Below, one piece after another: positions 25,637 to 60,992 of a stretch of DNA of 64,000 bases (the stretch's first letter is position 1; each line of letters opens with the position of its first letter). This DNA comes from Hemiscyllium ocellatum (taxonomy: Eukaryota). The stretch spans positions 372,001 through 436,000 of the forward strand of contig NW_026867531.1 in the NCBI RefSeq assembly GCF_020745735.1, in the 5' to 3' direction. The translations under genes were made by a program, and so were the position numbers. A model generated the notes under the pieces. The model was given only the letters and a program-made list of their open reading frames with translations, was not told the origin of the DNA and searched no databases.

Positions 25637-26475
25637 GGGGTGCACCCATCTCCAGCTCCTCCAAACCCGTGTTAGGGAACTGGAGCTGGAGTTGGATGAA
25701 CTGCGGATCATTCGGGAGGCAGAGGAGGTCATAGATCGGAGCTTTAGGCAAGTAGTTACTCCGAAAGTTCAAGATAGATGGGTGACAGTGAGGGGGAGTG
25801 GGAGGAGGAAGCCAGTGCAGGGACCCCCTGCGGTCATTCCCCTCAAGAACAAGTATACCGTTTTGGATACTTGTGGGGGGGATGACTTACCAGGGGCAAG
25901 CAACGAGGTTCAGGCCTCTGGCACGGAGCCTGGCCCCGTTGCTCAGAAGGGTAGGGTGGAGAAAGGTAGAGCAATAGTTCTTGGGGACTCAATAGTGAGG
26001 GGTACAGACAGACGGTTTTGTGGGGGCGACAGGGACTCACGTTTGGTATGTTGCCTCCCAGGTGCAAGGGTACGTGATGTCGCTGATCGTGTTTTCCGGG
26101 TCCTTAAGGGGGAGGGGGAGCAGCCCCAGATCGTGGTCCACGTTGGCACCAACGATATAGGTAGGAAGAAGGGTGAGGATGTCAGACAGGCTTACAGGGA
26201 GCTAGGTTGGAAGCTCAGAGTTAGAACAAACAGTTGTAGTCTCTGGTTTGTTACCCGTGCCACGTGATAGAGAGTCGAGGAATAGGGAGAGAGAGCAGTT
26301 AAATGCGTGGCTACAGGGATGGTGCAGGAGGGAGGGATTCCGGTTTCTGGACAACTGGGGTCCTTTCTGGGGAAGGTGGGACCTCTATAAAAAGGATGGG
26401 CTACACCTGAACCTGAGGGGCACCAGTGTCCTTGGGGGGAGGTTTGCTAGTGCTCTTTGGGAGGGTTTAAACTAA
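25637..26475 (+). pseudogene. CR1 ORF1 remnant (coiled coil + SGNH esterase-like domain), 5'-truncated and frameshifted
   Basis: ORFs 25629-26267 and 26248-26475 are two frames of one ORF1 (…VRTN|RVVVSGLLPVPR expected). It ends LWEGLN-stop. Confidence 0.85.
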
Positions 26476-29360
26476 CTCCGCGGGGGCATGGGAACCAGGA
26501 CTGTAGCTTTAGGGTACAGGACCTTGAGTGTAGGGAGGTTAGGAATAATGCAGCGATCTCTAAGGAGGGTGCCTGTAACCAGAAAGGTGGATTGAAGTGT
26601 GTATACTTCAATGCCAGAAGTATAAGGAATAAGGTAGGTGAACTTGCAGCGTGGGTTGGTACCTGGGACTTCGATGTTGTGGCCATTACAGAGACGTGGG
26701 TAGAACAGGGACAAGAATGGCTGTTGCACGTTCCAGGGTTCAAATGTTTTAGTAGGATCAGACATGGGGGTAAAAAAGGGGGAGGCGTGGCATTACTTGT
26801 CAAAGACAGTATCACAGCAGTGGAATGGACGATGGAAGAGGACTTGCCATCTGAGGTAGTTTGGGCTGAGGTTAGAAATAGAAAAGGTGAGGTCACCCTG
26901 TTAGGTGTTTTCTACAGGCCTCCTAATAGTCCTAGAGAAGTAGAGGATAATATTGCGAGGATGATTCAGGAAAAGAGTGAAGGTAGCAGGGTGGTTGTTA
27001 TGGGGGACTTTAACTTCCCAGATATTGACTGGGAGAGCTATAGCTCGAGTTCATTAGATGGGTCGGTGTTTGTACAATGTGTGCAGGAGGGTTTCCTGAC
27101 ACAATATGTCGACAGGCCAACAAGAGGGGAGGCTATATTGGATTTGGTTCTAGGTAATGAACCAGGCCAGGTGTTAGACTTGGAGGTAGGTGAGCACTTC
27201 GGGGACAGTGACCACAAATCGGTGACTTTTACTTTAGTGATGGAGAGGGATAATCGTGCGCCGCAGGGCAAGAGCTATAGCTGGGGGCAGGGAAATTATG
27301 ATGCAGTGAGGCATGACTTAGGTTGTGTGGATTGGAAAAACAGGCTTCAAGAGAAGAACACTAATGAGATGTGGGGATTGTTCAAGGAGCAGCTACTGCG
27401 TGTCCTCGATAGGTATGTACCAGTCAGGCATGGTGTAAAGGGCCTTGTGAGGCAGCCGTGGTTTAGTAAGGAATTGGAGTCCCTTGTGAAAGGGAAGAAG
27501 GCGGCATATGTAAAGATGAGGCGTGAAGGTTCAGTAGGGGCGATTGAGAGTTATAAGGTAGCCAGGAAGGAGCTAAAGAGGGAGCTAAGAGAAGCGAGAA
27601 GGGGACATGAAAAGTCTTTAGCTGGTAGGATTAGGGAAAACCCAAAGGCTTTCTATAGGTATGTCAAGAATAAAAGGATGACTAGGGTAGGTATCGGTCC
27701 AGTCAAGGATAGTAGTGGGAAGTTGTGTGTGGAGGCGGAGGAGATTGGAGAGACATTAAATCAGTACTTTTCATCAGTATTCACTCAGGAACAGGACACT
27801 GTTGCTGATGTGAATATGGAATCACAAATAATTAGAATGGATGCCCTGGAAATATGCAGGGAAGAGGTTTTGGGAATATTGGAAAGGATGAATATAGATA
27901 AGTCTCCTGGGCCTGATGGCATTTACCCCAGGATCCTATGGGAAGCTAGGGAGGAGATAGCAGAGCCATTGGCCTGGATTTTTATGTCGTCATTGTCAAC
28001 GGGAATAGTACCAGAGGACTGGAGGATAGCGAATGTGGTCCCCTTGTTCAAGAAAGGGAGTAGGGATAGCCCTAGTAACTATAGGCCAGTGAGTCTGACT
28101 TCAGTGGTGGGCAAAGTCTTAGAGAGAATGGTAAGGGATAAGATTTATGAACATCTGGGTAGGAATAACGTGATCAGGGATAGCCAGCATGGTTTTGTGA
28201 AGGGCAGGTCGTGCCTCACAAACCTTATTGAGTTCTTTGAGAAGGTGACTAAGGAAGTGGATGAGGGTAAAGCAGTAGATGTTGTGTATATGGATTTTAG
28301 TAAGGCGTTCGATAAGGTTCCCCATGGTAGGCTAATGCTAAAACTTCGGAGGTATGGCATTGAGGATACATTAGAGGTTTGGATTAGGAATTGGCTGGCT
28401 GGAAGGAGACAGAGGGTAGTAGTTGATGGATTATGTTCATCTTGGAGCGCAGTTACTAGCGGTGTACCACAAGGATCTGTTTTGGGACCATTGCTTTTTG
28501 TTATCTTTATAAATGATCTAGAGGAAGGACTTGAAAGCTGGGTAAGCAAGTTTGCGGATGACACGAAAGTCGGTGGAGTTGTGGATAGTGAGGAAGGAAG
28601 TGGTAGGTTACAGCGGGATATAGATAAGTTGCAGAGCTGGGCGGAAATGTGGCAAATGGAATTCAATGTAGCTAAGTGCGAAGTCGTTCACTTTGGTAGG
28701 AATAACAAGATGATGGATTACTGGGCTAATGGTAGGCTACTTGGTAGTGTGGATGAGCAGAGGGATCTTGGTGTCTATGTACACAGATCTCTGAAAGTTG
28801 CCACCCAGGTAAATAGTGCTGTGAGGAAGGCATATGGTGTACTGGGCTTTATTGGCAGAGGAATTGAGTTCCGGAGTCCTGAGGTCATGTTGCAGTTGTA
28901 TAAGACTCTGGTGAGGCCTCATCTGGAGTATTGTGTGCAGTTTTGGTCGCCATACTATAGGAAGGATGTGGAAGCTTTAGAACGAGTGCAGAGGAGGTTT
29001 ACCAGGATGTTGCCTGGAATGGTAGGAAAATCTTATGAGGAAAGGCTGAGGCACTTGGGGCTGTTCTCATTGGAGAAGAGAAGGTTTAGGGGAGATCTGA
29101 TAGAAGTGTATAAGATGATTAGGGGTTTAGATAGGGTAGATACTAAGAACCTTTTACCGCTAATGGAGTCAGGTGTTACTAGGGGACATAGCTTTAAATT
29201 AAGGGGTGGTAGGTATAGGACAGATGTTAGGGGTAGATTCTTCACACAGCGGGTTGTGAGTTCATGGAATGCCCTGCCCGTATCAGTGGTGAACTCTCCT
29301 TCTTTATGGTCATTTAAGCGGGCATTGGATAGGCATTTGGAAGTTATTGGGCTAGTATAG
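26457..29360 (+). CDS. CR1 ORF2: apurinic-like endonuclease + reverse transcriptase (967 codons open; no AUG before the endonuclease)
   Basis: APE motifs YFNARS, AITETW, GVFYRPP, MGDFN and SDH. RT motifs NYRPVSLTS, QHGF, DFSKAFDKV, GVPQGSVLGPLLF and FADD. Confidence 0.93.
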   Translation: MGGFKLTPRGHGNQDCSFRVQDLECREVRNNAAISKEGACNQKGGLKCVYFNARSIRNKVGELAAWVGTWDFDVVAITETWVEQGQEWLLHVPGFKCFSRIRHGGKKGGGVALLVKDSITAVEWTMEEDLPSEVVWAEVRNRKGEVTLLGVFYRPPNSPREVEDNIARMIQEKSEGSRVVVMGDFNFPDIDWESYSSSSLDGSVFVQCVQEGFLTQYVDRPTRGEAILDLVLGNEPGQVLDLEVGEHFGDSDHKSVTFTLVMERDNRAPQGKSYSWGQGNYDAVRHDLGCVDWKNRLQEKNTNEMWGLFKEQLLRVLDRYVPVRHGVKGLVRQPWFSKELESLVKGKKAAYVKMRREGSVGAIESYKVARKELKRELREARRGHEKSLAGRIRENPKAFYRYVKNKRMTRVGIGPVKDSSGKLCVEAEEIGETLNQYFSSVFTQEQDTVADVNMESQIIRMDALEICREEVLGILERMNIDKSPGPDGIYPRILWEAREEIAEPLAWIFMSSLSTGIVPEDWRIANVVPLFKKGSRDSPSNYRPVSLTSVVGKVLERMVRDKIYEHLGRNNVIRDSQHGFVKGRSCLTNLIEFFEKVTKEVDEGKAVDVVYMDFSKAFDKVPHGRLMLKLRRYGIEDTLEVWIRNWLAGRRQRVVVDGLCSSWSAVTSGVPQGSVLGPLLFVIFINDLEEGLESWVSKFADDTKVGGVVDSEEGSGRLQRDIDKLQSWAEMWQMEFNVAKCEVVHFGRNNKMMDYWANGRLLGSVDEQRDLGVYVHRSLKVATQVNSAVRKAYGVLGFIGRGIEFRSPEVMLQLYKTLVRPHLEYCVQFWSPYYRKDVEALERVQRRFTRMLPGMVGKSYEERLRHLGLFSLEKRRFRGDLIEVYKMIRGLDRVDTKNLLPLMESGVTRGHSFKLRGGRYRTDVRGRFFTQRVVSSWNALPVSVVNSPSLWSFKRALDRHLEVIGLV

Positions 29361-30960: not shown

Positions 30961-33333
30961 ACAGACTGCTTCTGGTTCCCTCTCATTGACTTTTGCTCGA
31001 AGTTAGTCTTTTCAGAATTATATAGGTCTCATCGAAATTACCCTCCATTTCATGTTTGAAGCCCAGCTACTTCAATCCCTCCTCATCATGAAAAGAGACA
31101 GGGATCATCTTTCTCACTGTTAGATGGCATTGCATTCTGCCTCTAATGCAGTGACTACATTTATAGTCCTCCAGTTCTGTTGAATATTTGTCAAACACAA
31201 CCACGGCTGTCACAGAAAAGGTTAAAGACAGATCAAAACTACATTTAAACTACCATATCAAGCACACTGTTGGCATGTGTTGCATGGAATACACACACAT
31301 TGCATATTAAAGCTCTCTCAGTACTCATCCATTAAACACTGCAAGGGTTGTTCAGAGATGATTTGCTTATGTGTGTGTGTATGTCTATGCCTGTAGATGA
31401 TAATCTACTTGTATAACAAAGTTTTGATGCATAGTGCTGTTCCCTTTTTATTCTGGTATCAAGCATTTCAAAATCAGAAAGACAGTGGGTAGGAGTTCAA
31501 GCCCCTTTACACGGCTACATCAAATGTTTTCCGTGATTGTACAGCTCATGTAATGTGCTGGGTAAATCTCCCTCTATATTGTGTTGTCCAATGCAATCAT
31601 GTCAAATATATTTTGGTTTAGACACAGAGTAGAGCTGCATCCAGGATTCCCTAAAAAAAATCCTCCCAGAGTTGACACAAAATAAATTGACCTCTACAAT
31701 ATTAAACCTTCCATGAGATGTGCAGTGTAAGGTTAATTATAGACTAAATATGCATTACACTGAACCATTAAACATTCCTCAGACAAGAATAATAGTGCTG
31801 AGATACAATGAAAACGCGAACACAGTAAAGTCTTGCAGCCTCATTCCTATCAAGCATTTCCAGATCACTCAATACTCAGACAGATGTTTGTAAAATCTTG
31901 CTGTCCTGACTCAAATCTCTCGAAAGAAATGGATGAATTTGGCTGAGAGGCAATGTTGGTGAGGTGTTGGCTTCATGTTATTGAGGAAAACATTGTCCGA
32001 TTGTGGAGAGGCAAAACAAGGCATCAGAGATAAAGTAAAAAGGGGGCAGGCAGGAGGGGAAGAGAGAAAAAGAGACACAGAAATATTAGCTGTGCCAATG
32101 TATCTCTTAATTATAGTTTTTTGACTAAACATGACAATTGATACCTCTGTCATTCAACAATCATACAACTTATGTATTAAAAAGTCCTAACATCAATTAG
32201 TATTGGAATCCATTGAGTTATTTGCATTTTTCCACAATTCGTGTGATGTGCTTGTGGGGAAATATAAATTAGGGTTTTGTGGTTCTGTAATCTATTCTGA
32301 GAATTCTATTTCTGTGTTTATTTACATAAATGCTTAATTGGCTTCAAGGAAGTGATGATGGCAGCAAAGCCAGGTGAATGAAGTGATTTGGTGGTAAGTT
32401 TCAAATCGAAACAAGTTTATTTTAAGAATGTTGACCATTTGCAGAAGTGAATAAAAATTTATGAAGCCGAATTGCAACAGATTTTATTTATTTCTGAAAG
32501 ATAAACAATTTAAAACTTTTATTTAGGTTAACAATTCAGTGCTGAAAATTCTGCAAATTTAGAATATTCACGTGAAATACAGGAACTGCCGCAACAATTA
32601 CATTTAATTGATATAGTTGTTACGAGGTTTCGTTACACGTATTACTTAATGGTAAGGGTCAGCAATGAGTCCCTATCCCCAACTGCCCATTGAATAGCTT
32701 GCTAAAGCCACTTCAGAACACAGTCAATTACTTCCCAGTGGGTCTGGAATCTCATGTCGGCCAGACCATGTAAAGGTGACAGATGCCTTGTCATTCGTGA
32801 ACCAGCTGTTTTTGTATTTTTCCATTGACTCGGGTTACATGGTCACCATTTGCCTTCCTTTCTGATTCCAGGATTTCTTTAAATTCACATTTCACCCTGG
32901 GCAAACGATGATATTCCAAACCCTGGCCATCCAACATCAAACTGGAGTTCGAGAATACTGGTCCCATGATATCATCACTGTGATCCAAATGTTGGCAATG
33001 TACAGAAAGCACAGAAATGCAATAAATCTGACACTTTACATCATGAACAAATATTGGAGTGAAATACTGGCAAGAACTCTCTTGCTGTTCACAGCAACAT
33101 CACAGGAGACTTTGCATCCACTCACCAATCTAAAATCTGTATCGGATCTGTCTGAAGAGCCTGACTCACCGTCATTTGCATTTGTTGAATTCTTCACTGA
33201 ATTATGAAAACGTTAGTCACATATCCCAAGAAGGTGGTCATCAGCTCCCTTTTTGAAGGCCTGCCATCTTGCTCGGCTAATTATGGTTGATCTTTCTTAA
33301 GAAGCTTTATTACAACCAAATGGCTTCTCAGTC

Positions 33334-33550
33334 GAGACTGTAGTGCTGGAAAAGTACAGCAGGTCAGGCAGCATCCGAGGAGCAGGAGAATCGACGTTTT
33401 GGGCAGAAGGCCTTCATTAAGATACCTGATGTAGCTGTTATGGCTGGAACATTGATTCTCCTGCTCCTTGGATGCTGCCTGACCTGCTGTGCTTTTCCAG
33501 CACTACACTCTCAACTCAGATCTCCAGCACCTGCAGTCCTCACTTTCTCC
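33334..33550. mobile_element. Short palindromic PLE derivative (older), imperfect TSD
   Basis: Inverted arms with a longer right arm ending ...CAGTCCTCACTTTCTCC. Flanks ATGGCTTCTCAGTC / ATGGGTTTCTTAGTC. Confidence 0.75.
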
Positions 33551-33849
33551 TGATGGGTTTCTTAGTCAGGTTCGGCACAGGAAAGGAACCATCGCCTTTT
33601 TGTTGAACAGGTCAGGCAGGCCAGGTAGGAAGGTCACACATCCTCCTCTGAAGGACAATACTGAACCATGTAACATGCTTCAAAACTTTGGTAGGTCTGT
33701 GATTATCATTCGTTACTTCAGCAGTTTCGTTTCATACTCTTTCATGAATTGAAGCTACTATGGTAGAGATTGGTTCTGGAACTTTACTCCAAACCTTTTG
33801 ATTGCTTATTACATACTCATAATGCCTCCTTAACCACTTTCTCAAACTG

Positions 33850-36000
33850 TCATATTAGCTTCAATGATTGTTTTATTGACTCATGGAACACGGTGGTTGC
33901 TTTTAGTTGTCGGTAGGTGTCCTTCAGAAGATGGCAGAAAGCTGCCTTTCTGAAATAACATCTTCCAAAATGACCTGAGGAAGGGAATTCCAGATTTTGA
34001 CCCAGTTACAGTAAAAGATCGATGATGTATTTCCATGTCAGGATGCCGAATAGTTTAGAGAGGAGCTTACAGTGGTGCTGTTCCCATGTATCTGCTGTTC
34101 TTATCCATCGAGATGCAAGTGGGAGTGGGAAGGTCCTGTGTAAGGAAGTGGCTAAGTTACTGCAGTGCAGTATTTTAGACAGTGCATACGGCAGGTATGC
34201 CTGAAGAAGGGCTTATGCCCGAAACATCGATTCTCCTGCTCCTTGGATGCTGCCTGACCTGCTGCGCTTTTCTAGCAACACATTTTTCAGCATATGGCAG
34301 ATACTAAGCATCAGATTTGGAGGCAATGGACGCTTGTGGATGTGCTGCTGATCAAGTGGGATGCTTTGTCCTGGACAATGCCTAGCTTCTTGAGTGCAGT
34401 TGAAGGTGCTCCTGTCCAGTCAAAGGGTGAGCTGTGCTATTACCCTCCTGACTTCTGTCTCTTAGACAATTAATTGGCTTTGCAAGTCAGGAGGGTGAGT
34501 TACTCACTGCAGTATTCCTAGCCTCTGGCCTGCTCTTACAGCCATTGTATTTATATGGAGTGTCCAGCTCAATTTCTAATGAACAATAAAACCCAGGATG
34601 TCGATGGTGAGGGATTCCGTGATGGTAACACTATTGAATGTCAAGGGGTTTTGGTTAGATTGTCTCTTATTGTCAATGGTCATTGTCTCGCAAGTTTGTG
34701 GTGTGAATGCTATTTGCCACTTGTCAGCTCAAGGCTGGAAATTGTCCAGATTTTGTTGCGTTTGAATGTGGACTGAGCAGTCCCAAAAAAAGTGCTAGAT
34801 CAATGCAGATTTCACTTCTGACCTTCTGAGGGAGGGAAAGGCATTGCTGAAGCAGCTGAACATGATTGGGCCAAGGACACTTTCTTTAGGAACTCCAACA
34901 GAGATTTGCTTTGGCTGAGACGACTGCCCTCTAACAAGCAGAGCCACCTTCCAATGTGTGAGGTCTGACTGCAGGCAGCAGGGAGGTTGTCACCTGATAC
35001 CCATTGAATCCAGTTTTGCTAGGACTCCATAATATCACACTCTGTCGAATGTGACCTTAATGTGAAGAGCTGTCACTCTTCCCTCATTTCTGGAATTCAG
35101 TTCTTTGTCCATGTTTAAATCAACTAGGAGAAAGTGAGGACCGCAGATGCTGGAGATCAGAGCTTAAAAATGTGTTGCTGGAAAAGCGCAGCAGATCAGG
35201 CAGCATCAAAGGAGCAGGAGAATCAACGTTTTGGGCATAAGCCCTTCTTCAGGAATCAGCCTTCAGAAGGGCTTATATCCAAAACGTCAATTCTCCTGCT
35301 CCTTTGATGCTGCCTGACCTGCTGCGCTTTTCCAGCAACACATTTTTAAGCCATGTTTAAATCAAGTCTGTACTTCAGTCATGAGCTGAGTAGGCCTTGC
35401 GTAAGCCACATTTTATGTCACCAAGCAGGTTATTACTGAGCTAGTGCTGCTTGATAGCACTGTTGAAAGCACCTTCCTACACCTAACACATGATTGAGCA
35501 TGGACTGATGGAGCAGGAAGTCGCCAGGGTGGTTTGACCTATTTTCTGTGCACAGAACATGCCTGGCCTATTTTCCACATTGTCCATGCCAGTGTGGTAG
35601 CTGTACTGGGAGTGCTTGGCTAGCACAAGTCATCAGTATTATTGCCAGAATTTTGTCAGGCTCCATAGCATTTGCAGTAACCAGTGCCCCCCAGCCCAAC
35701 CGTGTCTTGATTTCACATGGAGAGAAGCGAATTCCCTGCTGACAGGTATCTGTAATATTGGTGATCTATGGAAGATGCTGAGATGGATCAGACAATTGGC
35801 ACTTCTGGCTGACGATTGCTGTGAATACTTCAGCCTTAACTTTTGCGCTGATGTGTTGTGCTCTCCAAAGCCGAGCAAGGGGATATCTGTGGAGCTTATT
35901 CCTGCAATGAGTTGTTTAATTATCAACTTTAGTTCATGACTTGATGTGGCAGCACTGCAGGCTCAGACCCCAGTTTCCTGAATTAATGGTCTAGCCACAA
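33850..36000 (-). mobile_element. Highly degenerate non-LTR retroelement RT-region fragment, containing later PLE-derived inserts at about 34200-34290 and 35124-35350
   Basis: General resemblance to common shark LINE sequence and TSD-flanked inserts. No long ORF; family not assigned. Confidence 0.45.
35124..35350. mobile_element. Short palindromic PLE derivative; 15-bp TSD
   Basis: TSD CCATGTTTAAATCAA at 35109-35123 and 35351-35365. Inverted arms with degenerate hammerhead cores. Confidence 0.9.
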
Positions 36001-37849
36001 TATCTCCAGACTATAACTCCAACTCGCACTCCATGATGTGATATGCACAACAGAAGATCGCTTATCCTTTGTATTTGTAGATTTCAACAATACATCATAT
36101 ATTCGCTTAATTTGTTAGTCTTGAAAATGCTTTACTTCACAGACTTTAGGATATAATGTTCTGTTTTCAATTTTTCTCTCCAACAGGCAAGGTCATCGAT
36201 GTCACACTGGCTTTCCTCCTCATTAATTGCAAAACCAAATGTTTTTCACCTCATCTTTGAACTTACTGATCAAAATTGCTACATTCTTGACTAGACCGTT
36301 CATATACGCTGCAAACAGCAAAGGATCCAGCACCAAGTCATATGGTAAGCCACTGGACACAAGATGTCTTCACAATGACTACCTTTGACCTTTAGCTTCT
36401 GCCAACAAATAAACCTTCGATGCATTTGCCAAACTGCACCAGATCCCATGAACCCTTAGCATATTGAAGATGCAAGATCTGGTCAAAAACCTGATTGAAG
36501 TCAAGAAGCATCACATCCACTTTTTACACCCGATGGCACATCTCATTGCCTCTGCGGAAAACAGAATCAACCACTTCCCAGATGGTCTCACTTCCACCAA
36601 AGCCCTGCTGAATTTTATTGACTAAACCTTACAATTCCAACTTTTAATGAATGCTGTCTCTTAGATTTATTTATTAACTTCCCCCAAGCTTTCTACTTTT
36701 AAACATAGGTTTATGAGCGAAACTACATATTGTCATTTCGCTCCTTTCACCCGGTGATAACTCTTTCTTATCTCTCTGACAGATAATTTACTCTCGCTGA
36801 AATAATCTTGTGTCTCTTCTGTTTCATTCTGGAAAATGGGAATGGAATTGAATACAATGTTGAGACCATCAGCAAACTGTCTGTTTGCTCTTGACACTGT
36901 CAGTGTGTTCACCCTCAGAGGTAGGAAGACTGTTTGTGCTGATAATATGGAAAGTAGCGCCTGATGTATCATTCTCAGCTGGCGCGCAACTTCCTGTTTC
37001 TATGTGCCAGCAGCAAGCCACACATCTCACTTCTGATCAGAAAATAAACCCAGGGGATACAATCTGGCAGAACCACCTGCCAATGTGGCCTATATCAGGA
37101 CACAGAGTGTGAAGTGATCACATTGAAGTGACATTTGCAAATCGACCTTTCGATCTCTATTTCACGGTCTGATTCCAGGATGTCGTTGGACGAGTCTCTC
37201 GACTATCGAACAAGCTCATTCGATTCACTAATGTCTGGAACACATTGACATGCACCTTTTCATGTCTTTGATCGTGTACTACTTGTTACTGTCTCTTCAG
37301 ATTTAATGTTCCCAGCTTTTGATTCTGTCTTCTGTATTCATCACCTTCCCAGCCGAATACATTCTGTTTGATCTATTTCCTAAATTTTGATCAATTAAAC
37401 AAATAATACAGTTTAGTACAGACAGGTCTGTTGGTGTGTCCGATTAACAGAATCAATCAATATATGGAGAGATCACCTTGGCTGTATCTAACTCTGACCG
37501 ACATTGAATTCAAATAAACCACAGCACTGTGTGGTTTCAAACTTTGCAAATCCTCTCTCTTTGATAGAGCTTGTTCTAACGGTTAATTCTTTTCTTGATT
37601 ATTTCAGAAACTATAATTAAAAATCCCTATTTTTAACCAAGTTTCAAATATTATTAAAAGTTGCAGCACTGGCATTTCCTACAGTGAGCTTTGTGGTGTT
37701 TAAATGTTCTGGTCAAAATTTGCTTCAAGCAGAAGACTGAACCATTGGTTTCTCTGAGTTCCCAGCCATTGCCCTTGCAGTTCCATAATAACTGCAAGCT
37801 ATTGATAAGCCCCAGAATGAACAGAATGTCCAGGCCCTGTACACATCCA

Positions 37850-38970
37850 AACGCCATGATGGAGGCCTCGAAGCCCTCCGTTTCTTCCTGTCACGCCAAC
37901 CCAAGCAGTACATGCTCAACCTCAACTACATTTCCTTTCAATCCTCCCACTTCCTCCAAACCAAAGGGGTAGCCATGGACACCTATATGGACCCCAGCTA
38001 TGCCTGCGTCTTCGTCAGATATGTGGAACAGTCAATCTTCCACAGCTACACCGGTATCATTGCCCATCTTTACCACCGCTACATTGATGACTGTATCAAC
38101 GCCACCTCATGCAACCACTAGGAGGTTGAACAGTTCATCTACTTTACTAAAACCTTCCACCCTGACCTAAACTTTACAGGGACCATCTCGGACACCTCCC
38201 TTCCTTTCCTAGACCTCTTCATCTCTATCTCCAGTGACCAACTAAACATTTACTACAAGCCCACTGACTCCCACAGCTACCTGGACTACACCTCCTCCCA
38301 CCCGACCTCAGGTAAAAATGCCATCCTTCATTCTCAATTCCTCTGCCTCCACCGCATCTGCTCCCAGGAGGACCAGTTCCACCATAAAACATCCCAGGTC
38401 CTTTATCAAAGACTGCAATTTCCCTCCCACGTGGTCGATGATGCCCTTGAACCCCATCCCTCCAATTGCAACAGGGAGCCCTCCTGGTCCTCACCTTCCA
38501 CCGCACCAACCTTGCATACATCATATCATCCTCTGCTGCTTCCACCACCGTAAACAGACCCCATCACTCGGGGTATATTTCCCTCCCTACACCTATCGGC
38601 ATTCCGGAGACACCATTCCCTCCACGACTCCCTCGTCAGGTCCATGCCCCCCACCAGCCCACTCCCCACCCCTGTCACCTTCCCCTGTCACCACAGGAAG
38701 TGCAAAACCTGCGCCCACACCTCCCCCCTCACCTCCGACGAGGCCCCAAATGATCCTTCCACATCCCATAGAAACTTATCTATACTTCCACAAATGTCAT
38801 CCACTGTGTCTGTTCCACCTGATGTGGTCTCCTCTGCATCAGGGAGACAGGACACTAACTTGCGGATCATTTCAGAGAACATCTCTGGGACACCCGTGCC
38901 AACCAACCCCACAGCCCCGTGGCTGAACACTTTAACTCCCCCTCCCACTCCACCAAGAACAGCCGGTCAT
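37850..38970 (+). mobile_element. Old Penelope-like RT/GIY-YIG fragment
   Basis: Remnants QSSHFLQTKGVAMDTYMDPSYAC and RYIDDCI, collinear with 3400-4600. Confidence 0.85.
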
Positions 38971-41545
38971 ATTCCTGTTTAATTCCAATGAATAAATACA
39001 AAATAACCGAGTCTGAATTTGGGATGATATTAATAGGATTTATTTCGATCTAAGCATGAACAGATTATTTTGACTGAACAGGTGGAGAGATTCACTTCCT
39101 GAAAAAGCAGCTCAAGTGATATAAGCTGGCACCAAACCGAGGTTGGTCAATACTGAGGCAAAACTACAGCATCCAGTCTTGAGTGAAATAAATAAAGAAA
39201 CTATCTTAACCCCAGAAAAAGATAGAGTGCATTAAATATGAACAAAGACACAAGTTTTTTAGGATATAATAGAAAAGTAATTTATAGTATATTGAAATGC
39301 AAACAGAGATGTGAGGTCTCTACATTCTTCCTAGCTAAATTAATCATTTCAGAAATGCCTTTGTTAATTTTCATGTATCACTCGTCGGTCCATTCCATGA
39401 ACCTTGCTAGATCCTTGTTAAATTCTGAACCATCAGGCGGTGGTTCTCAGTGGTTGTGAGTTTCATGTTATAGCAAATTGTGATGTTGTCCACTGTATGC
39501 CAATGTCTTAGTTAAAAATTTAAAGCAATCACAGCTCCAAACATTTACAAAATATCACTATGGATCTTCCTTGAGTCCAAAATAAAATGTCCCTTTGATC
39601 AATGATTTCTAAAATTTGTTCCCATATCTGTTGTGAAGGACGTTTTCAAATAACTTGAAGTGCAAATGGTTCCCATCAGTCGGAATACAGTAACATTTCA
39701 TGTGTTACCCCACACAAAAACAATCAAGCAATTTTGTTGTCACAAGTTGTTCTAAACAAGTCTAGGATGGACTGTTTTATCAAACAAAATCATTTCCAAT
39801 GTTGTGAGGACTCGTCTATCTTCTGTGCAATGTTCTGAATTTTGTATCTGAATGCAGATGTAACTGGCTGCTCTGGGTAAAAGTACAGTTTGTGCCTTTC
39901 ACATTGTTAATGTATATTACTGACTTTAGTTGAATAAAGTGATGTTGTCCCAGGCATCGTCTGGCACCATTAATTAGACCATTAATTCCCACATCGCTAG
40001 CCAGAGAGTCAGGTGGAGCTGGGATTGTTTTCAATTTTTGACCCAGACATTGGCGTATTTCCCCTATGGTGGGGGATTTCAACAATAGGGAACATGTTTT
40101 TACAATGAGAGGAGAAAATTTTTTAAAAAGATATCAGAGACAACTTTTTACACAGAGAATGGTTTGTGTGTGCGATGATCTGGTGGTGGATACTTACAAC
40201 CTATAGAAGACATTTGGATAAGTAAATGAATATCAAATGTTTGGAGGGATATGGGCCAAGTACACCCAGGTGGGATTAGTTTAGTTTGGGATTATGACTG
40301 GCATGGACTGGTTGGTCTGAAGTGTCTGTTTCCATGCTGTCTCACTCCATGACTCTATGACTATTTATCAATGTTTCTCAATATTAAACAGTGCTGTAGT
40401 GACCCTCGAATGAACTGTTGATGTTTAGGTTGTGTCTGAGACTCTGCGTATATTTCCTTCAATGAGAGGAGTGACTAGTTCTCCAAGTTTCACAACTGAA
40501 AAATAAACTTTTCTCCAGTATTGTTGCTGAGTAGATGTGTTCCTGCAGAGGCAGTGGTTATGGTTTGCAGTTTGCTTTCCACCAACTGGTCAACAGTGAG
40601 ACAAAATATCTTTGATCCACTGCAGAAACTCCACTTGCTTCCAGTAAATGAAACTGAAACTCAAGGACCTTTTCTGCAGTCAGCTTAATTGCTGCCAACT
40701 ATTGTATCTGGCCGATTAAAGGGAAAATGAATCAACTAAAGTAAAATCCTACCAAACAAACTTTATTTTCCCATTTACTCACAATGGATACATTTCACTT
40801 GGCATTTCTTCTTTAAAAAGGAAAGTCACAGAATACAGCATTCACTGTATGACTATCAGAGCCAGGACATTGAATGCAGTAACATTCTGGTTAGTTCAGT
40901 CTGTTTATTGAGTATCTTTAAAGCTCCTGAATATGAAGTTAATGGATCCAAAATCCCACATTGCAGTAACATTTGTTATCATCTCAAAGTAAATTAACAA
41001 ACTTGAATTGGTTCAAACTCACATCACTTGTTGCATCATTCTCTGATTCATGTATCTCATTAAAACTGAGTGGGCCCTTTATACATGGTCAACACTGGTG
41101 TCGTGTAACAGTGAATTTTTGCTTATTTTTATGAGTTAACTGCCCCTGTCAGAGCTATCAGTGAGCAGAGAAATGTACTGTTTATAACCTACATTCGTGG
41201 TAATGATTATTGTAATACTCTCTAATTTAACCAAACACTCCTGATGTCCCCAGGCAGTTACCTGCAATGGTTTAGATGTTGAGGATATTGAAAAAAACGT
41301 ATGGACTGTCCTGTTCTAATTCATTAGATGCTCTTTCAAAAGTTTACCTAGGCGTTATGTATCACTGCCAACTCACTTTTTGTTTCTCAGGCACACAGCT
41401 TTCCTTTACTATGCATTTTAGGGTCAGAGCAATTTGAAAAAAACGATGCAAGGAGAGACATTCTGCAATGTAAGGAGGTGCTTCTAATCTCCGGGTCCAA
41501 GCTGTTTAGTGATATCCATTCACAATCCGAACATAATGTATCGTT

Positions 41546-41856: not shown

Positions 41857-42305
41857 AATCACTTTAGACCTGCTCCATATTCGGTTGCCTAAATGGAATT
41901 TAGAAACGCAGATTAGAAATGGGATGTTATTTTGTAAAGTGAGAGAGACTTTGAGTGACAGCAAAAATAAAGTCACTCATTTTGTTGGTTAATAATATGA
42001 TTGAAGTTCTTTTTAGCTTTATCTGCTTGTGGTGGAATGTAGAATTAAAGGGAGTTAACTTCAAATTGAATATTCTGAATATAATCACTTTGGACACGCT
42101 CTGTATTCAGTTGCCTAAATTGAATTTTGAAATGTTTAGTATGAATTACATGTTATTTTGTAGTGGGACAGAGACTGGCAGTGTCCTGGGAAATAAAAGC
42201 TCAATTGTTTTACTAGCTAGTAATACGTTTGAACTTTGATTTTAGTTTTATCTGCTTGTGAATGAATGTAGAAATAAAGGGAGCTAACTTTCAAATGAAT
42301 TTTTT
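41855..42305. repeat. Direct tandem duplication, 226-bp period, two diverged copies upstream of the VH promoter
   Basis: ATAATCACTTT(A/G)GAC...GTTGCCTAAAT...TTATCTGCTTGTG...AAAGGGAG(T/C)TAACTT starts at 41855 and again at 42081. Confidence 0.85.
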
Positions 42306-42566
42306 AAAAACAAAATACTTGCAACTATCATGTGAAACAGACCTGAAGCTACTCAATTTTACTCCCACCATTTAAAAAAAAACTCCCAAAGAAGCTATTC
42401 AGCAAAATAAATATCCCAAGATGTGTATATATCCATGTTTAAGCGTAACCTGGTAAATACATGAGCCCATGTGTTGGGGCTGTGCAAGCTGAGACCAGGA
42501 TCCAGTCTCAGCCTCCAGCAGGAAACCAACAGGCGGAAGCTGTAAGCCTGCCCTTTCCGATGGCCA

Positions 42567-42573
42567 TATAAAT
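42567..42573 (+). promoter_or_regulatory. TATA box of the VH promoter (no octamer upstream)
   Basis: TATAAAT 87 nt before the leader ATG. No ATGCAAAT/ATTTGCAT was seen in 42300-42660, consistent with octamer-less shark VH promoters. Confidence 0.75.
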
Positions 42574-42659
42574 CCTAGGCACTGGACCGTAATTCAACAC
42601 TCCGGGATCGGCTTTGTTTAGAAAGATCTTGACAGAACCGCTTCCCAGAAGTTATCAGA

Positions 42660-42708
42660 ATGATTGTGTCGACAATTTTTCTCAGTTTATTACTGACTTT
42701 CTTATCAT
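42660..42708 (+). CDS. IGHV: IgM VH leader exon 1 (MIVSTIFLSLLLTFLS + 1 nt)
   Basis: Hydrophobic signal peptide, phase-1 donor T|GTGAGT at 42709, and a 128-bp intron to TTAAAG|. Confidence 0.93.
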
Positions 42709-42836
42709 GTGAGTGTTTTTTGTTCAAGTCTGTCTTTGTTACTGTCTCAATGTTAGTCTACCTCAGGAATGTAAAAGACTCAGGCATCATTTCATCTGCA
42801 TTAATGCTCATGGTTTATTTCTTGTCTTTTTTAAAG

Positions 42837-43145
42837 GTGTCCACTCGGAGATTGTTTTGACCCAGCCAGAGGCAGAGACTGGCCGTCCCGACGGCAGCCT
42901 GGAACTGACCTGTAAAACCAGCGGGTTCGATCTCAGCAGCTACTGGATGTACTGGGTCCGCCAGGTTCCCGGCCAGGGTCTGGAGTGGCTGGTTAGCTAC
43001 TATAGTTCATCCAGCAGTTACTATGCACCAGCGATTAAGGGTCAATTAACTGCGTCCAAAGACACTTCAAACAACATTTTCGCATTGGACATGGGGAACC
43101 TGAAGATCGAAGACACCGCCATCTATTACTGTGCAAGAGACGGGT
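42837..43145 (+). CDS. IGHV: IgM VH exon ([26 protein letters not shown]...[13 protein letters not shown]...[12 protein letters not shown]), open frame
   Basis: Canonical V-domain Cys, Trp and YYC. Shark mu-type framework. Ends at an RSS heptamer. Confidence 0.97.
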
Positions 43146-43183
43146 CACAGTGTTGTGCACAGCGACATCCTCATACAATAACC
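43146..43183 (+). other. RSS, 22-bp spacer (CACAGTG-22-ACAATAACC)
   Basis: Heptamer 43146-43152, spacer 43153-43174, nonamer 43175-43183. Confidence 0.95.
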
Positions 43184-43486
43184 ACTGACAAGGATTTATC
43201 TCAAATTGGTGATTTCTACCGTGGCAGGAGCGAGAAATAATGTGAGATGCAATTTAAACACAATCCAGTCGGGCTAGTTTGTACAAATGTATAATTTTTT
43301 TCTACTTTCTTCGTGTTGATTGTCAAGTTAAATGCAGACCAAACCTGGAAAAGTATTCCAAGCTTTCAAAATACAATGAATAGTAAAAGCTGAAATAATG
43401 CACCAAATCATTTTTAGAGGAGTCTGAATCACTGCTTTCTGGGAAGTGAAGAAATTATTTGCATTTTACAGTTTACAGTCTGTCAT

Positions 43487-43557
43487 AGTATTTGACACAA
43501 CGTGTCTCACAGTGAGAGAGCTGGAATGGCACTGCAATTATGATCAATACAAAAACC
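43487..43557 (+). other. IGHD: DH segment AGAGAGCTGGAATGG (43515-43529) flanked by two 12-bp-spacer RSSs (D2-type)
   Basis: 5' RSS AGTATTTGA(43487-95)-12-CACAGTG(43508-14). 3' RSS CACTGCA(43530-36)-12-ACAAAAACC(43549-57). All three forward frames are open (RELEW / ESWN / RAGM). Confidence 0.9.
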
Positions 43558-43883
43558 TATTCAGCCTCCATTGTTTGAAACTAGTCAGTGATTATTTCTA
43601 CAAACCGTCTTAACTTGCAGTGCAGTATTAGTTCTGTGGGTTTTATGCCAGTATCACTATTTAATTTGGAAAAGGGTTGGGTAATTATTGATATACCAGT
43701 TGGGGATTTTGAGAATCAGCTCATGTGTTACTCTGTGAAGTATAAAACAGTATTAAAATTTATCAAGAATGATCAGAATTCACTAGCGCAATTATGTGAT
43801 GAAGATTTATCGGGACTTTATTTTGCCTGTGGTTCTGAAAATTTAAAATGATGGTAGATTTTTGATTTGTTTTATGCAGAGCT

Positions 43884-43970
43884 AGTTATTATGTGACTCA
43901 GTCCAGAGAACGTAACACTGTGAGTATCTTGATTACTGGGGCCAAGGGAGCATGGTGACTGTGACTTCAG
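43884..43970 (+). CDS. IGHJ: JH segment (43923-43970, YLDYWGQGSMVTVTS) with upstream 23-RSS
   Basis: AGTTATTAT(43884-92)-23-CACTGTG(43916-22), WGXG motif, and phase-1 donor G|GTAAGA at 43971. Confidence 0.95.
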
Positions 43971-44490
43971 GTAAGAACTTTGAACTTTCCTAGTGACTTT
44001 TTAAAAACTTTCTATCCATGTGACTAATTTCTGAATTAAATGAAGCTCAGATTCTGTGCTGAGTTTGGTTTGGTTCGGATTGATTTTTGTTCAGACTGAT
44101 TATAGACTTCAGTTAATGCTCAGCAAATAGTTAAAATGGTGATGATGGAGTCAGTTGCTCGGTGTATCTCTATTGTTTGATCAGATGGGCATTCTGTGTG
44201 GCTGGGTTACTTGAAACACCTAATGTCTCTTAATCAGTCAGCTATAAATAATGTTTAATGCCAGTGACACCCTGACTGTGAGTTTTATTATCAACAACAA
44301 ATGCTAAGAATTCAAAGATGTTCAAGATATTACCAAACATGACTAAAATATGCTAAAATATCATGATTCATTTCCTGAATATATGTTCTTACCATGATTA
44401 TATTTTCTCATTTATTTTGTTAATTTTGTTGATGACAAGCAGGTTAGAAACTGTCATAAAAGCTTCTTGCGGTGCTATATTGCATTCTGT

Positions 44491-54141: not shown

Positions 54142-54450
54142 AGACACCATCTCCCCCCACGCTTTATGGCCTGGTCTCCTCCTGTGAGGGGCACAACACC
54201 GATTCGACAATCTTTGGTTGTTTGGTGATGGACTATTCCCCTGACGTCACCAAGGTAACCTGGAAGAAAGGTGGGGAGCTAATCACGGATGGATTGAAGA
54301 CTTACCCATCAGTGAGAAACAAGAAGGGAACCTACACCCTGAGCAGCCAGTTAACCCTGCCCGGGTCAGCGGTAGATTGCCCCAGCAAAATCTACTGTGA
54401 GGTTGAACACAGCGGGTCACACTCACACAAGAGCAAAGAAATGCCATGTG
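54142..54450 (+). CDS. IGHM: IgM Cmu1 exon ([E][14 protein letters not shown]...[10 protein letters not shown]...W...IYCEVEH...KEMPC)
   Basis: Acceptor TTGTAG| at 54141, open C1-set domain, and donor G|GTACGT at 54451; phase 1 on both sides. Confidence 0.93.
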
Positions 54451-57480: not shown

Positions 57481-57562
57481 CCACAAGAAACCTTGATATA
57501 TGAGAACTGATTGTATTTGTTATGAAATTCATCAGATAATTTATGCGATGTGTTTCCTAAAG

Positions 57563-57874
57563 GTAGAGGTCCTCTCCCACCAACTCTTCTCCTAACTGTG
57601 AGCTCCAGTGAAGAAATCGCAAGCAGCAAGTTTGCAACCATTGTCTGTTCAATCATCAATTTCCATCCGAAGTCAATCTCCGTGAGTTGGTTGAAAAATG
57701 GCCGACTCTTGGATTCTGGCTTCTTCATGTCTCCCGTGTGTGAGGCGAACGGGAACTTCTCGGTGACGAGTCGGCTGATGGTCCCTTATGGTGAATGGTA
57801 CAACAGCGCAGTCTATACCTGCCAGGTCACTCATGAAGACAACATTCAAAGTAAAAACATCACCGCACTCCAGG
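57563..57874 (+). CDS. IGHM: IgM Cmu2 exon ([G][17 protein letters not shown]...C...W...[20 protein letters not shown])
   Basis: Acceptor CCTAAAG|, donor G|GTAAGA at 57875, and canonical Cys/Trp/Cys. Confidence 0.93.
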
Positions 57875-59843
57875 GTAAGAGACACATACTGAGAGAGCTA
57901 CAAATCACTCTGAACTCTGATGTGAATCAAACACACTAATTTATCAGGCGTAGTAAACAGCAAGGTACAGCTTCTCGTTTCCCCACATGTCACGTATCTC
58001 ATTTCGGTTTGAGTGTTACATTAGCATTGCTCATAATTCAACATTTTGGCAAGTCAGAAAAGCATGTTTCCTCTCTGTTGAAGATAGATATATAGACAGT
58101 GAGCTTTGTTAAATAGTTTGTTGCCTGACCTTGCTGGGAGAGGCATTCAGAGTGCTGAATCCTTGCCTGGTAGTGGCTTCAAGGATAAGTTTGGGGGTGG
58201 AGGGGAATATTGGAGAGATATCTAATTGAAACATAAAAAATACTGAGAGACTGAGGTCGAGTGAACGTGGAATAGACGTTTTGACTGGTAGGCGAGACTA
58301 GGACCTAAGGGCACAGTCTCAGGGTCAAAGGGGCACCGTTTAGAACTGAGATGGGGAGGAATTTCTTCAGCCAGAGGGTGATGAATCTGTGGAACTTGTT
58401 GCTGCAGAGGGCTGTGGAGACCAGGCCATTGTGTATATTCAAGCCAGAGATAGTTCGGCTCTTGTTTCGTGTGGGGAGAAGACAGTAGAATGGCTTTAGC
58501 CCGAAACGTCGGTTTTCCTGCTCGTCGGATGCTGCCTGACCTGCTGTGCTTTTCCAGCATCATTCTGACCTAAACTCTGGATTGGCCGAACAGCCTTATT
58601 CTGATCCTCTATCTTATGATGATGTGGTCTCAAAATGACGTGGTTAAAATATGCAGTGACCCTTACTTGAAAGTAAATCAGAATGCGTTCAATGCTTCAT
58701 TCCCTGATCAGGAATGACCTGTTGGCCTTGGACATTGTACGACATCGATTTTTATCTGGTACTGAGCTCTTTAACTACATTTATGGGATCAGACCACAGA
58801 CCAAGTGGGTATCACATTTGATGAACTGGGATAAACGTGGTCTCACTGAGCTTCTTTAAGATGCTCTCTGTAAGTAGTGGATGAGGCAGGAGAATAAATT
58901 CTGGTAAGAATGCTACAAAAGGGATGAATGAACGAGGAACTCGAGACAGGCTGATTTAGCCTGGTTTAGGGTGGTGATGTTTACACAGTGGGTAGTGGAT
59001 GTCTGTAATATTAGTGTACATTTCCATCACGTTTGTAGATTAATTTAAGACGTTTTTGTTTGTTTTTTTTCTCCCCTGCTCTATGAAGAAATTTTTAAAA
59101 TGCAGCTTGGTAAATAAAGTGAAAGTACAGACCAGTCATGAACGAACTGAATGGAGGGAAAGACTTAAGGAGATGGGTGTCCTTCTCGATATCCAATGCT
59201 GTACTCAGTGCCTTGTTTTCAGATCTACTCCAAACGCAGCCCACGAGGAACAATGACATAAATTAGAGAATGACATCACACCAATAACGCAAAGTATTTT
59301 TGATCACGTTAAATATAATGAACAGAATTTCCATGGCTATTCACCGCTCCTGTAACACTTTAGAACTCTGCAAAGAGAATAATTATTATTTATTATAATT
59401 TGTCCGAAATTTGGGATGTGATTTAGCAGTCAGCGTGACCAGCAGCACTTACACCTAAGGGTTATGAACATGGAATTGAACTCATTATATTCAGATTACT
59501 CTTGTCACAAGTATCAATAGATGGTCTTAAGTGAGAGACAAACTCTGAAAGAAAGGTAATTCCATGGGTTACATAATGGTATCTTCGATGATTTTACTTT
59601 TTTCACAGGTGTCACTTGTTACAAAGCCAGTGTTCTTTAGGAATAATGACACAGGGTATGTCATAGGTAATCACAAATGCTTTCACAAATCAAAATACAT
59701 CAACAATAGTAAGCATCGTTTCAGCAATGGTTGGAGTTGCCATTTTGAAGGTGGTGTCTTCACCCTGTGAAGAAGTAATCTGAAGATTGGGTGTTTGTAT
59801 CATAAAGGGGCATTTTTCATTGACTTTGATTTTTGTTTCATAG

Positions 59844-60152
59844 AAGATACCGAGTGCCACCCTAACACCGTTAAAATCCTCCCACCGCCAGTAGAACAAG
59901 TCTTACTGGAGGCGACAGTGACGTTAACCTGCGTTGTGTCCAATCTTCCTTCTGGAGTCAACGTGACCTGGAAACAAGAAAAGAAGCCTCTGAAATCAGA
60001 GATTGCTGACCAGCCTGGACAGAATCCCGACAGCGTGATCAGCAAATTAGACATTTCTACTGAAGCCTGGCTGAGTGGCGTTACTTTTGAATGTGTGGTG
60101 TACCATCAGAATCTACCGACTCCGCTGAGAGACTCCATCCACAAGGAGAAAG
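59844..60152 (+). CDS. IGHM: IgM Cmu3 exon ([E][15 protein letters not shown]...[22 protein letters not shown])
   Basis: Acceptor TTTCATAG|, donor G|GTGAGC at 60153, and canonical C1-set motifs. Confidence 0.93.
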
Positions 60153-60600
60153 GTGAGCGGTGAGATTAAAACACAAAGCATCCCATGTGGAATCCAGATC
60201 CAGTTACATCAATGGCAGGCTTTCACTGGTAATGAACAAAAACCGTTGGGAGCATTAATGATGCATCTGAAGGCAGGATAGCTAAGTAGCTGATTAAGAA
60301 AAAGATGGACCAAAGGATATTGTATTCTGATTAAGTCAGATAAGGTGGGAAGTAACCTGGGTTGTGATGTCACCATCAGCAATGACAGTTGGACAGAATG
60401 CCCTTGTTGTGGGCTGGAAACATGGAGGCAACTTTCACTTTACTTTTTTTACTGAACAGAATGTGTACCATACTGCTCCTTTAGAAAAGGAAAGTGAATA
60501 AATCCCAAATTTAAAATGACGTATTTTAATATTGAGTGAAATTGTGATATTGGTTCAGGATGCTTTTGGTTGATTTATATTTGTCTCAAATATTCTGCAG

Positions 60601-60992
60601 TGATTAATCCGCTGGAGCCATCAGTGTCGGTCCTCCTGCCACCAACAGAAGAAATCTCCGCTCAGAGGTTTCTCTCCCTCACCTGTTTAGTGAGAGGTTT
60701 CTCCCCCCGAGAGATCTTCGTCAAGTGGACAAACAATGACAAGCCGGTGAATCCCAGTAACTACAAGAACACCGAGGTGATGGCGGAGAGTGACAACACT
60801 TCCTTCTTCATCTACAGCCTGTTATCCATTACAGCGGAGGAGTGGGCCAGCGGTGCTTCTTACTCCTGTGTGGTGGGACATGAAGCGATTCCATTGAAGA
60901 TCATCAACAGAACAGTCGATAAATCCAGCGGTAAACCGAGTTTCGTAAACATTTCACTTGCACTGATGGACACTGTTAATTCATGTCAATAA
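60601..60992 (+). CDS. IGHM: IgM Cmu4 exon + secretory tailpiece (...[25 protein letters not shown])
   Basis: Acceptor TTCTGCAG|, tailpiece with NIS glycosylation site and penultimate Cys, and stop TAA at 60990-60992. Confidence 0.95.
60930..60936 (+). promoter_or_regulatory. Internal Cmu4 splice donor (G|GTAAAC) for the membrane-form TM exons (TM exons not recognised in the window)
   Basis: The position at the S-S-G|K boundary before the tailpiece is the conserved secreted/membrane alternative donor in IgM genes. Confidence 0.85.

Follow-up and report, generated by a model that had tools for sequence, protein, structure and literature searches.

A probable germline-joined VD1-D2-J IgM heavy-chain cluster in the shark Hemiscyllium ocellatum

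The IgM cluster and its recombination signals

The stretch of Hemiscyllium ocellatum DNA analysed here, 64,000 nucleotides long and called the window, carries in its 3' third one complete IgM heavy-chain cluster on the + strand, as read directly in the sequence. Leader, V, J and Cmu1-4 all lie on this one strand and make up a complete IgM mini-cluster, secretory tail included. The leader exon (42660..42708, +) reads directly as MIVSTIFLSLLLTFLS plus the first base of a Cys codon and is followed by a GTGAGT donor. The V exon (42837-43145, +) ends TGTGCAAGAGAC followed by GGGT, that is, TAT TAC TGT GCA AGA GAC GGG T. Its V-derived part (42837..43141, +) ends TGT GCA AGA GAC and matches the Pfam V-set domain with E = 2e-14; the final C could have come equally well from V or from D1, and the V coding end is otherwise full length. 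The four bases GGGT (43142..43145, +) abut V without N bases and are the last 4 nt of D1.

Behind these four bases lies a recombination signal (RSS; 43146..43183, +), the 3' signal of D1, which consists of the heptamer CACAGTG (43146-43152), the 22-nt spacer TTGTGCACAGCGACATCCTCAT and the nonamer ACAATAACC (43175-43183). The first-pass annotation of this DNA had described a V end GAC GGG T with CACAGTG-22-ACAATAACC behind it, and direct reading found both in place. The D1-D2 intersegmental DNA (43184..43486, +) falls inside a heptamer-to-heptamer span of 362 nt (43146-43507). It is followed by the D2 5' RSS (43487..43514, +), with the nonamer AGTATTTGA, a 12-nt spacer and a heptamer that reads CACAGTG on the + strand (43508-43514), by the D2 coding segment AGAGAGCTGGAATGG (43515..43529, +), and by the D2 3' RSS (43530..43557, +), which reads CACTGCA, a 12-nt spacer and ACAAAAACC. 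The J RSS (43884..43922, +) is made up of the nonamer AGTTATTAT (43884-43892), a 23-nt spacer and the heptamer CACTGTG (43916-43922); the JH coding segment YLDYWGQGSMVTVTS (43923..43970, +) comes next and ends at a GTAAGA donor.

Recombination signals were scanned for over 42800-44100 on both strands, with CAC required, up to two heptamer and three nonamer mismatches allowed, and spacers of 11-13 or 22-24 nt. Beyond the signals after V, flanking D and before J, none was found in this range on either strand. The degenerate D2 3' heptamer CACTGCA fell below the scan threshold; its nonamer is perfect and the signal is conserved in related clusters. A single D between V and J, with 12/12 spacers, is thus seen here, as had been noted before.

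The intron between J and Cmu1 is ~10 kb long. The Cmu1 exon (54142..54450, +) has an AG acceptor and a GTACGT donor and matches the Pfam C1-set domain with E = 9e-15. Cmu2 and Cmu3 lie within open frames (57526..57936, +, C1-set E = 2e-17; 59771..60160, +, E = 6e-11), and Cmu4 with the secretory tail lies in the open frame 60540..60989 (+, E = 3e-22). An exact Ig octamer was absent within ~360 bases upstream of the start codon (42301-42700 searched). The nurse shark 'mem1' primer had no match in the window, and membrane exons may lie beyond position 64,000 or be too diverged for it. Just 3' of Cmu4, in the expected place of the membrane exons, a retroelement with a shorter open frame and a strong reverse-transcriptase match is found on the opposite strand (62268-63773, -).

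The 40 kb upstream of the cluster are repeat DNA, with CR1-type LINEs, other reverse-transcriptase fragments and a minisatellite. One CR1/LINE-like retroelement (26451-29357, +) appears intact, having an open frame of 969 aa with endonuclease and reverse-transcriptase domains; a second (3061-4776, +) has a shorter open frame with a weak reverse-transcriptase match. The minisatellite (6236-8735) extends over 2.5 kb with ~76 copies of a 33-nt unit at 79% matches, and gives rise to long spurious open frames on both strands.

Related clusters and the V-D1 joint

The best protein match to the V exon of the window is a VH of C. punctatum (brownbanded bamboo shark), with 86% amino acid identity, and no H. 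ocellatum gene model was found among the V matches of 56-178 aa. The comparison was made with the contigs behind four C. punctatum V proteins and one whale shark protein, aligned by BLAST to window positions 42400-44300; the unjoined comparators accordingly come from a related species, C. punctatum, and not from the H. ocellatum genome itself. Two clusters have V apart from D1, L001 (C. punctatum BEZZ01001580) and L004 (C. punctatum BEZZ01002017), and the window is 90-93% identical to them in non-coding DNA. The leader exon of the window is collinear with that of C. punctatum P0001/L001. In L002, which holds two clusters, and in L003 (C. punctatum BEZZ01001741 and BEZZ01002062), V runs directly into the D2-J interval, the arrangement of a joined VD1D2-J gene. 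Germline joining is frequent in this IgM family: three of the five C. punctatum clusters read are VDD-J, with differing junctions, and the whale shark cluster L005 (Rhincodon typus NC_063338) is fully VDJ joined.

The two L002 clusters (L002:1470-3561, -, and L002:10402-13733, +) lie ~7 kb apart on one contig in opposite orientation; they are ~88% identical in V and upstream DNA, and their junction sequences are unlike. In the whale shark chromosome assembly the joined VDJ of L005 (L005:10465-10540) reads CARDWGGSLHYWGQETMVTVTA, then a GTAAGA donor, and this cluster may correspond to IgM1gj of the nurse shark.

In L001, V ends GCAAGAGAC and is followed by CACAGTG, a 23-nt spacer (AGAGGAGCC...) and the nonamer TCAAAAACA. 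Its D1, ATACTACAGTGGGT, lies ~440 bp 3' of V and is followed by CACAGTG-TTGTGCATAGCGACATCCTCAT-ACAAAAACC. The layout of L004 is the same, with ATGCGACAGCGGGT as D1 and ACAATAACC as the D1 3' nonamer. The D1 segments of these unjoined relatives end ...CAGTGGGT and ...CAGCGGGT, both finishing in GGGT, and the V end GCAAGAGAC is common to five V genes of three species (L001, L003, L004 and L005 included).

Relative to window 43515-43725, a deletion in L001 (L001:11289-11320) has taken away half of D2 on its 3' side, the 3' RSS of D2 and ~190 bp of the D2-J interval; its D2 reads ATATAGCTG and then directly ATGTGTTACTCTGTG, a deletion without an RSS boundary. Since the D2 3' RSS is gone, L001 is probably unable to complete the D2-to-J join. 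In L004 (L004:10380-10520) the V heptamer is CGCAGCG and not CACAGTG, and a 1-nt deletion in FR3 puts protein model P0020 out of frame, so that this closest relative of the window cluster looks like a pseudogene. Transposon content upstream also differs between the window and L001/L004, which bears on orthology. The DNA upstream of the V promoter (window 35604-41288 against L001:2395-9028) is entirely different, with lineage-specific insertions, and further upstream (window 32777-35604) the window is collinear with L001 again.

A three-way alignment of the window with L001 and L004 locates the joint. The window tracks its relatives as far as GCAAGAGA(C), resumes at (C)GGGT CACAGTG and remains collinear through D2. 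What is missing by comparison is the V RSS, the V-D1 interval of 370-440 bases, the D1 5' RSS and 9-10 bases of D1. From 43141 onwards, collinearity with L004 extends across J and 3 kb of intron (92% identity over 4 kb). The D2 5' RSS is identical in all three clusters, the D2 segment is homologous to that of L004, ATATAACTGGGGTGA, and the D2 3' RSS is conserved in L004 as well as in L002 and L003, where it follows the VDD joints. The J RSS is conserved in L001 and L004.

Over 38 nt (43146-43183) the signal behind V agrees with the D1 3' RSS at 36/38 positions in L001 and 37/38 in L004, against 25/39 and 20/39 for the V RSS of the same clusters, to which the likeness is confined to the heptamer and a portion of the nonamer. 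The first-pass annotation had assigned GGGT to the end of D1 and the 22-spacer signal to D1, and this comparison favours both assignments. It had also proposed an alignment with the V-D1 and D1-D2 intervals of unjoined clusters. The 362-nt span (43146-43507) matches the D1-D2 interval at 337/363 positions in L001 and 330/362 in L004 (91-93%), whereas its match to the V-D1 interval (247/442 and 221/367) is at the chance level for a global alignment. Likewise, a 383-nt alignment between window 43142-43523 and the D1-D2 region of one related cluster has 92.7% identity (E = 9e-162). Malecek et al. (2008, PMC2435157) describe a nurse shark primer, 'RSS-D1', for sequence 3' of D1; in the window it matches at one place only, 43159-43176 (15/18), inside the 22-nt spacer.

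The V genes of L001 and L004 end in GCAAGAGAC, that is, at GAC and not in GACGGGT, an ending that would have spoken for a germline V end in the window. The junction GAC|GGGT is accounted for wholly by V and D1, and no N base is needed. The earlier proposal of an untrimmed V end without N additions holds as regards the N bases; V itself is either full length or one base short, the last C being ambiguous. Judged by sequence comparison, the V/D/J arrangement is far beyond chance, and the comparison supports a fusion of V to the final 4 nt of D1, with the 22-spacer RSS as the 3' signal of D1.

Origin of the join

The reading we favour, at a probability of roughly 0.8, is that the V(D)J recombinase joined V to D1 in a usual V-D1-D2-J-Cmu cluster and that the product, VD1-D2-J, was inherited. 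The RAG cuts would have fallen at the 23-RSS of V and the 5' 12-RSS of D1, with loss of the V RSS, the ~370-440-bp V-D1 interval and the D1 5' RSS. The V end would have been kept full length or minus one base, D1 trimmed by 9-10 of its 14 bases, and the two ends ligated without N bases. The product would be a V exon ending GCAAGAGAC-GGGT that now bears D1's own 3' signal with its 22-nt spacer.

The positions of the breakpoints are the evidence for this enzyme. The 5' breakpoint coincides, to within one base, with the border between V coding sequence and heptamer, the 3' breakpoint lies inside the 14-nt D1, and no RSS bases are left. Breakpoints so placed, with neither signal nor N bases between them, are characteristic of RAG coding joints formed in the absence of TdT, and it is from them that we infer RAG as the probable maker of the joint. 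The trimming of D1 by 9-10 nt is on the large side. The same pattern of joint has been described for germline-joined shark light-chain genes, which show 'little evidence of TdT activity' (Lee et al. 2000, PMC2193156).

The alternative that survives best, though we hold it to be unlikely, is a somatic one: a '1R' VD-D-J rearrangement in a lymphocyte or thymocyte would have found its way into the assembly consensus, and the germline allele itself would be V-D1-D2-J. The nurse shark '1R' genes have the configuration seen in the window cluster and, like it, retain the 3' signal of D1. In the nurse shark, VD-D-J often arises somatically in lymphocytes, especially thymocytes, and in the thymus ~60% of Group 2+4 IgM genes are rearranged, mostly to intermediates (Malecek 2008, PMC2435157). 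The nurse shark molecules are, however, somatic, polyclonal and usually furnished with N additions, whereas the window joint is an assembly consensus without N bases. Polyclonal cells carry many junctions per locus, and a consensus assembly should therefore keep the germline majority. Shark blood DNA, moreover, comes mainly from nucleated erythrocytes, which counts against a somatic joint in the assembly. Somatic shark joints typically contain N bases (Lee 2000, PMC2193156); their absence from this joint is suggestive, not proof. Three VDD-J clusters are found in 200-340-kb contigs of the independent C. punctatum assembly, and inherited joins thus appear to be common in the family. Taking these points together, we regard the inherited origin of the join as probable.

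Less probable again is an ordinary deletion, by replication slippage or the repair of random breaks, which would have removed the ~400 bp between V and D1 with no part played by RAG. Plain deletions do occur in such clusters, as the deletion in L001 that is not bounded by an RSS attests, and, had the ancestral D1 ended CGGGT like that of L004, one junction base (C) could be a microhomology. Against it, the chance that random breakpoints in ~400-nt intervals would hit both the V border and D1 is estimated at about 1 in several thousand to 10^-4. The particular forms of slippage can be followed to their products. Slippage between the two direct CACAGTG heptamers, or an assembly collapse, would leave no GGGT, and slippage on ACAGTG, which the V heptamer and D1 have in common, would give CACAGTGGGT; neither the heptamer-heptamer nor the ACAGTG product is seen in the window, and both candidates were rejected.

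A natural one-D cluster, or a simple loss of D1, in which the RSS behind V is V's own and GGGT the germline V end, would suit the single 12/12 D between V and J, which a V with a 22/23 signal could legally join, but is extremely improbable and was rejected, since unjoined V genes end at GAC and both the signal and the next interval are homologous to the D1 3' RSS and the D1-D2 interval rather than to the paralogs' V RSS (25/39, 20/39) and V-D1 interval.

Age, predicted function and known relatives

The polarity of the join was examined with a maximum-likelihood tree of 3.2 kb of the J-Cmu intron from the window, L001, L004, L002 and L003. The topology obtained was ((window, L004) 100/100, L001) 95/96, with L002 and L003 outside; pairwise identities were 93.0%, 90.8% and 89.6%, and the terminal branch of the window is ~0.03 substitutions per site. 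V(D)J joining is irreversible. Since L004 and L001 are both unjoined, the window join arose on the cluster's own terminal branch, and the joined state is, by this tree, derived and fairly recent. The converse, that the split state derives from a joined one, was rejected on the tree together with the irreversibility of joining. The VDD joints of L002 and L003 have other junctions and sit on other branches, which indicates that joining has been recurrent in the gene family.

As far as can be predicted, the VD1-D2-J gene could work: its reading frames are all open, no fault is seen at the splice sites of leader, V, J and Cmu1, and its four signals are plausible. It is presumably expressed. Behind VD1, the heptamer matches the consensus perfectly, while the nonamer departs from it at one position, as does that of L004. 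The remaining segments are unrearranged and 12/23-compatible (22-RSS, 12-D2-12, 23-J). A lymphocyte would need two joins, VD1 (22/23-type) to D2 (12) and D2 (12) to J (23), while a direct join of VD1 to J breaks the 12/23 rule. The first-pass annotation had likewise counted two 12/23-compliant joins instead of three, and this count stands, no further RSS having been found. In practice the cluster would behave like a one-D cluster. With one junction fewer and most of D1 gone, its CDR3 should be shorter and less varied. The earlier suggestion that the gene hard-wires ARDG at the start of CDR3 is overstated: every cluster of the family has A-R-D encoded in its V, and the GGGT end would be opened, trimmed and extended at the VD1-to-D2 join, so that Gly would be retained only in untrimmed products.

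Germline-joined antibody genes are the main evidence for RAG action in the germ cells of cartilaginous fish, and they are one proposed source of 'innate-like' receptors such as IgM1gj. The window cluster probably belongs to the partly germline-joined shark antibody genes, a class known since the 1980s. Lee et al. (2000, PMC2193156), with reference to Kokubu et al. 1988, report germline VD- and VDD-joined IgM genes for the horned shark Heterodontus francisci, and reviews describe shark IgM clusters as 'partially (VD-J, VD-DJ) or fully (VDJ)' joined (PMC5192425, PMC4279169). As far as that account of the horned shark genes goes, they resemble the window in having V fused to D in genomic DNA with the other segments split and RSS-flanked, and their joins are likewise attributed to RAG activity in germ cells. 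They differ in that the window represents another order and family and has only D1 joined, with 4 nt left.

Closer to hand are L002 and L003 of C. punctatum, which belong to one gene family with the window (73-88% non-coding identity) and carry the D1 remnants CAGTGGG and ACGTGGG right behind V. They are a step ahead of the window cluster: D2 has been joined as well, and the joint ends in the D2 3' 12-RSS. Their junctions are unlike that of the window, which points to independent events. Nurse shark IgM1gj (PMC5192425, PMC4279169) and whale shark L005 are inherited V(D)J products in an IgM cluster, as the window gene probably is, and have the V end GCAAGAGAC, but they need no recombination, whereas the window gene still needs two joins. 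Chicken VH pseudogenes, discussed by Lee et al. (2000, PMC2193156), are also germline V-D fusions; these, however, are gene-conversion donors without RSS, leader or C exons, whereas the window holds a complete cluster that could still recombine.

In the literature searched, no paper describing IgM cluster organisation in hemiscylliid sharks was found. A protein search with the junction and RSS read-through gave no candidate for the same joint in a database that holds few shark proteins. The description of the gene as a distinctive IgM, given in the first-pass annotation, is overstated, as VD- and VDD-joined germline IgM genes are a described shark class (PMC2193156, PMC5192425, PMC4279169). 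Because such genes have already been described, the window cluster is a further example that leaves the picture unchanged, and specialists already accept VD, VDD, VD-DJ and VDJ forms in shark germlines. What it adds is a well-documented single-join (VD1-D2-J) example in a hemiscylliid shark. Close unjoined clusters supply the V end, D1 and both intervals, so that the join can be dissected base by base, and by the tree the joined state is derived and recent. It is possible, though we put it forward tentatively, that RAG activity in the germ cells of hemiscylliid sharks is ongoing and frequent, with some joins still polymorphic in the population. If so, one could measure directly, across individuals and species, how often and in what order V(D)J joins are made in the germline.
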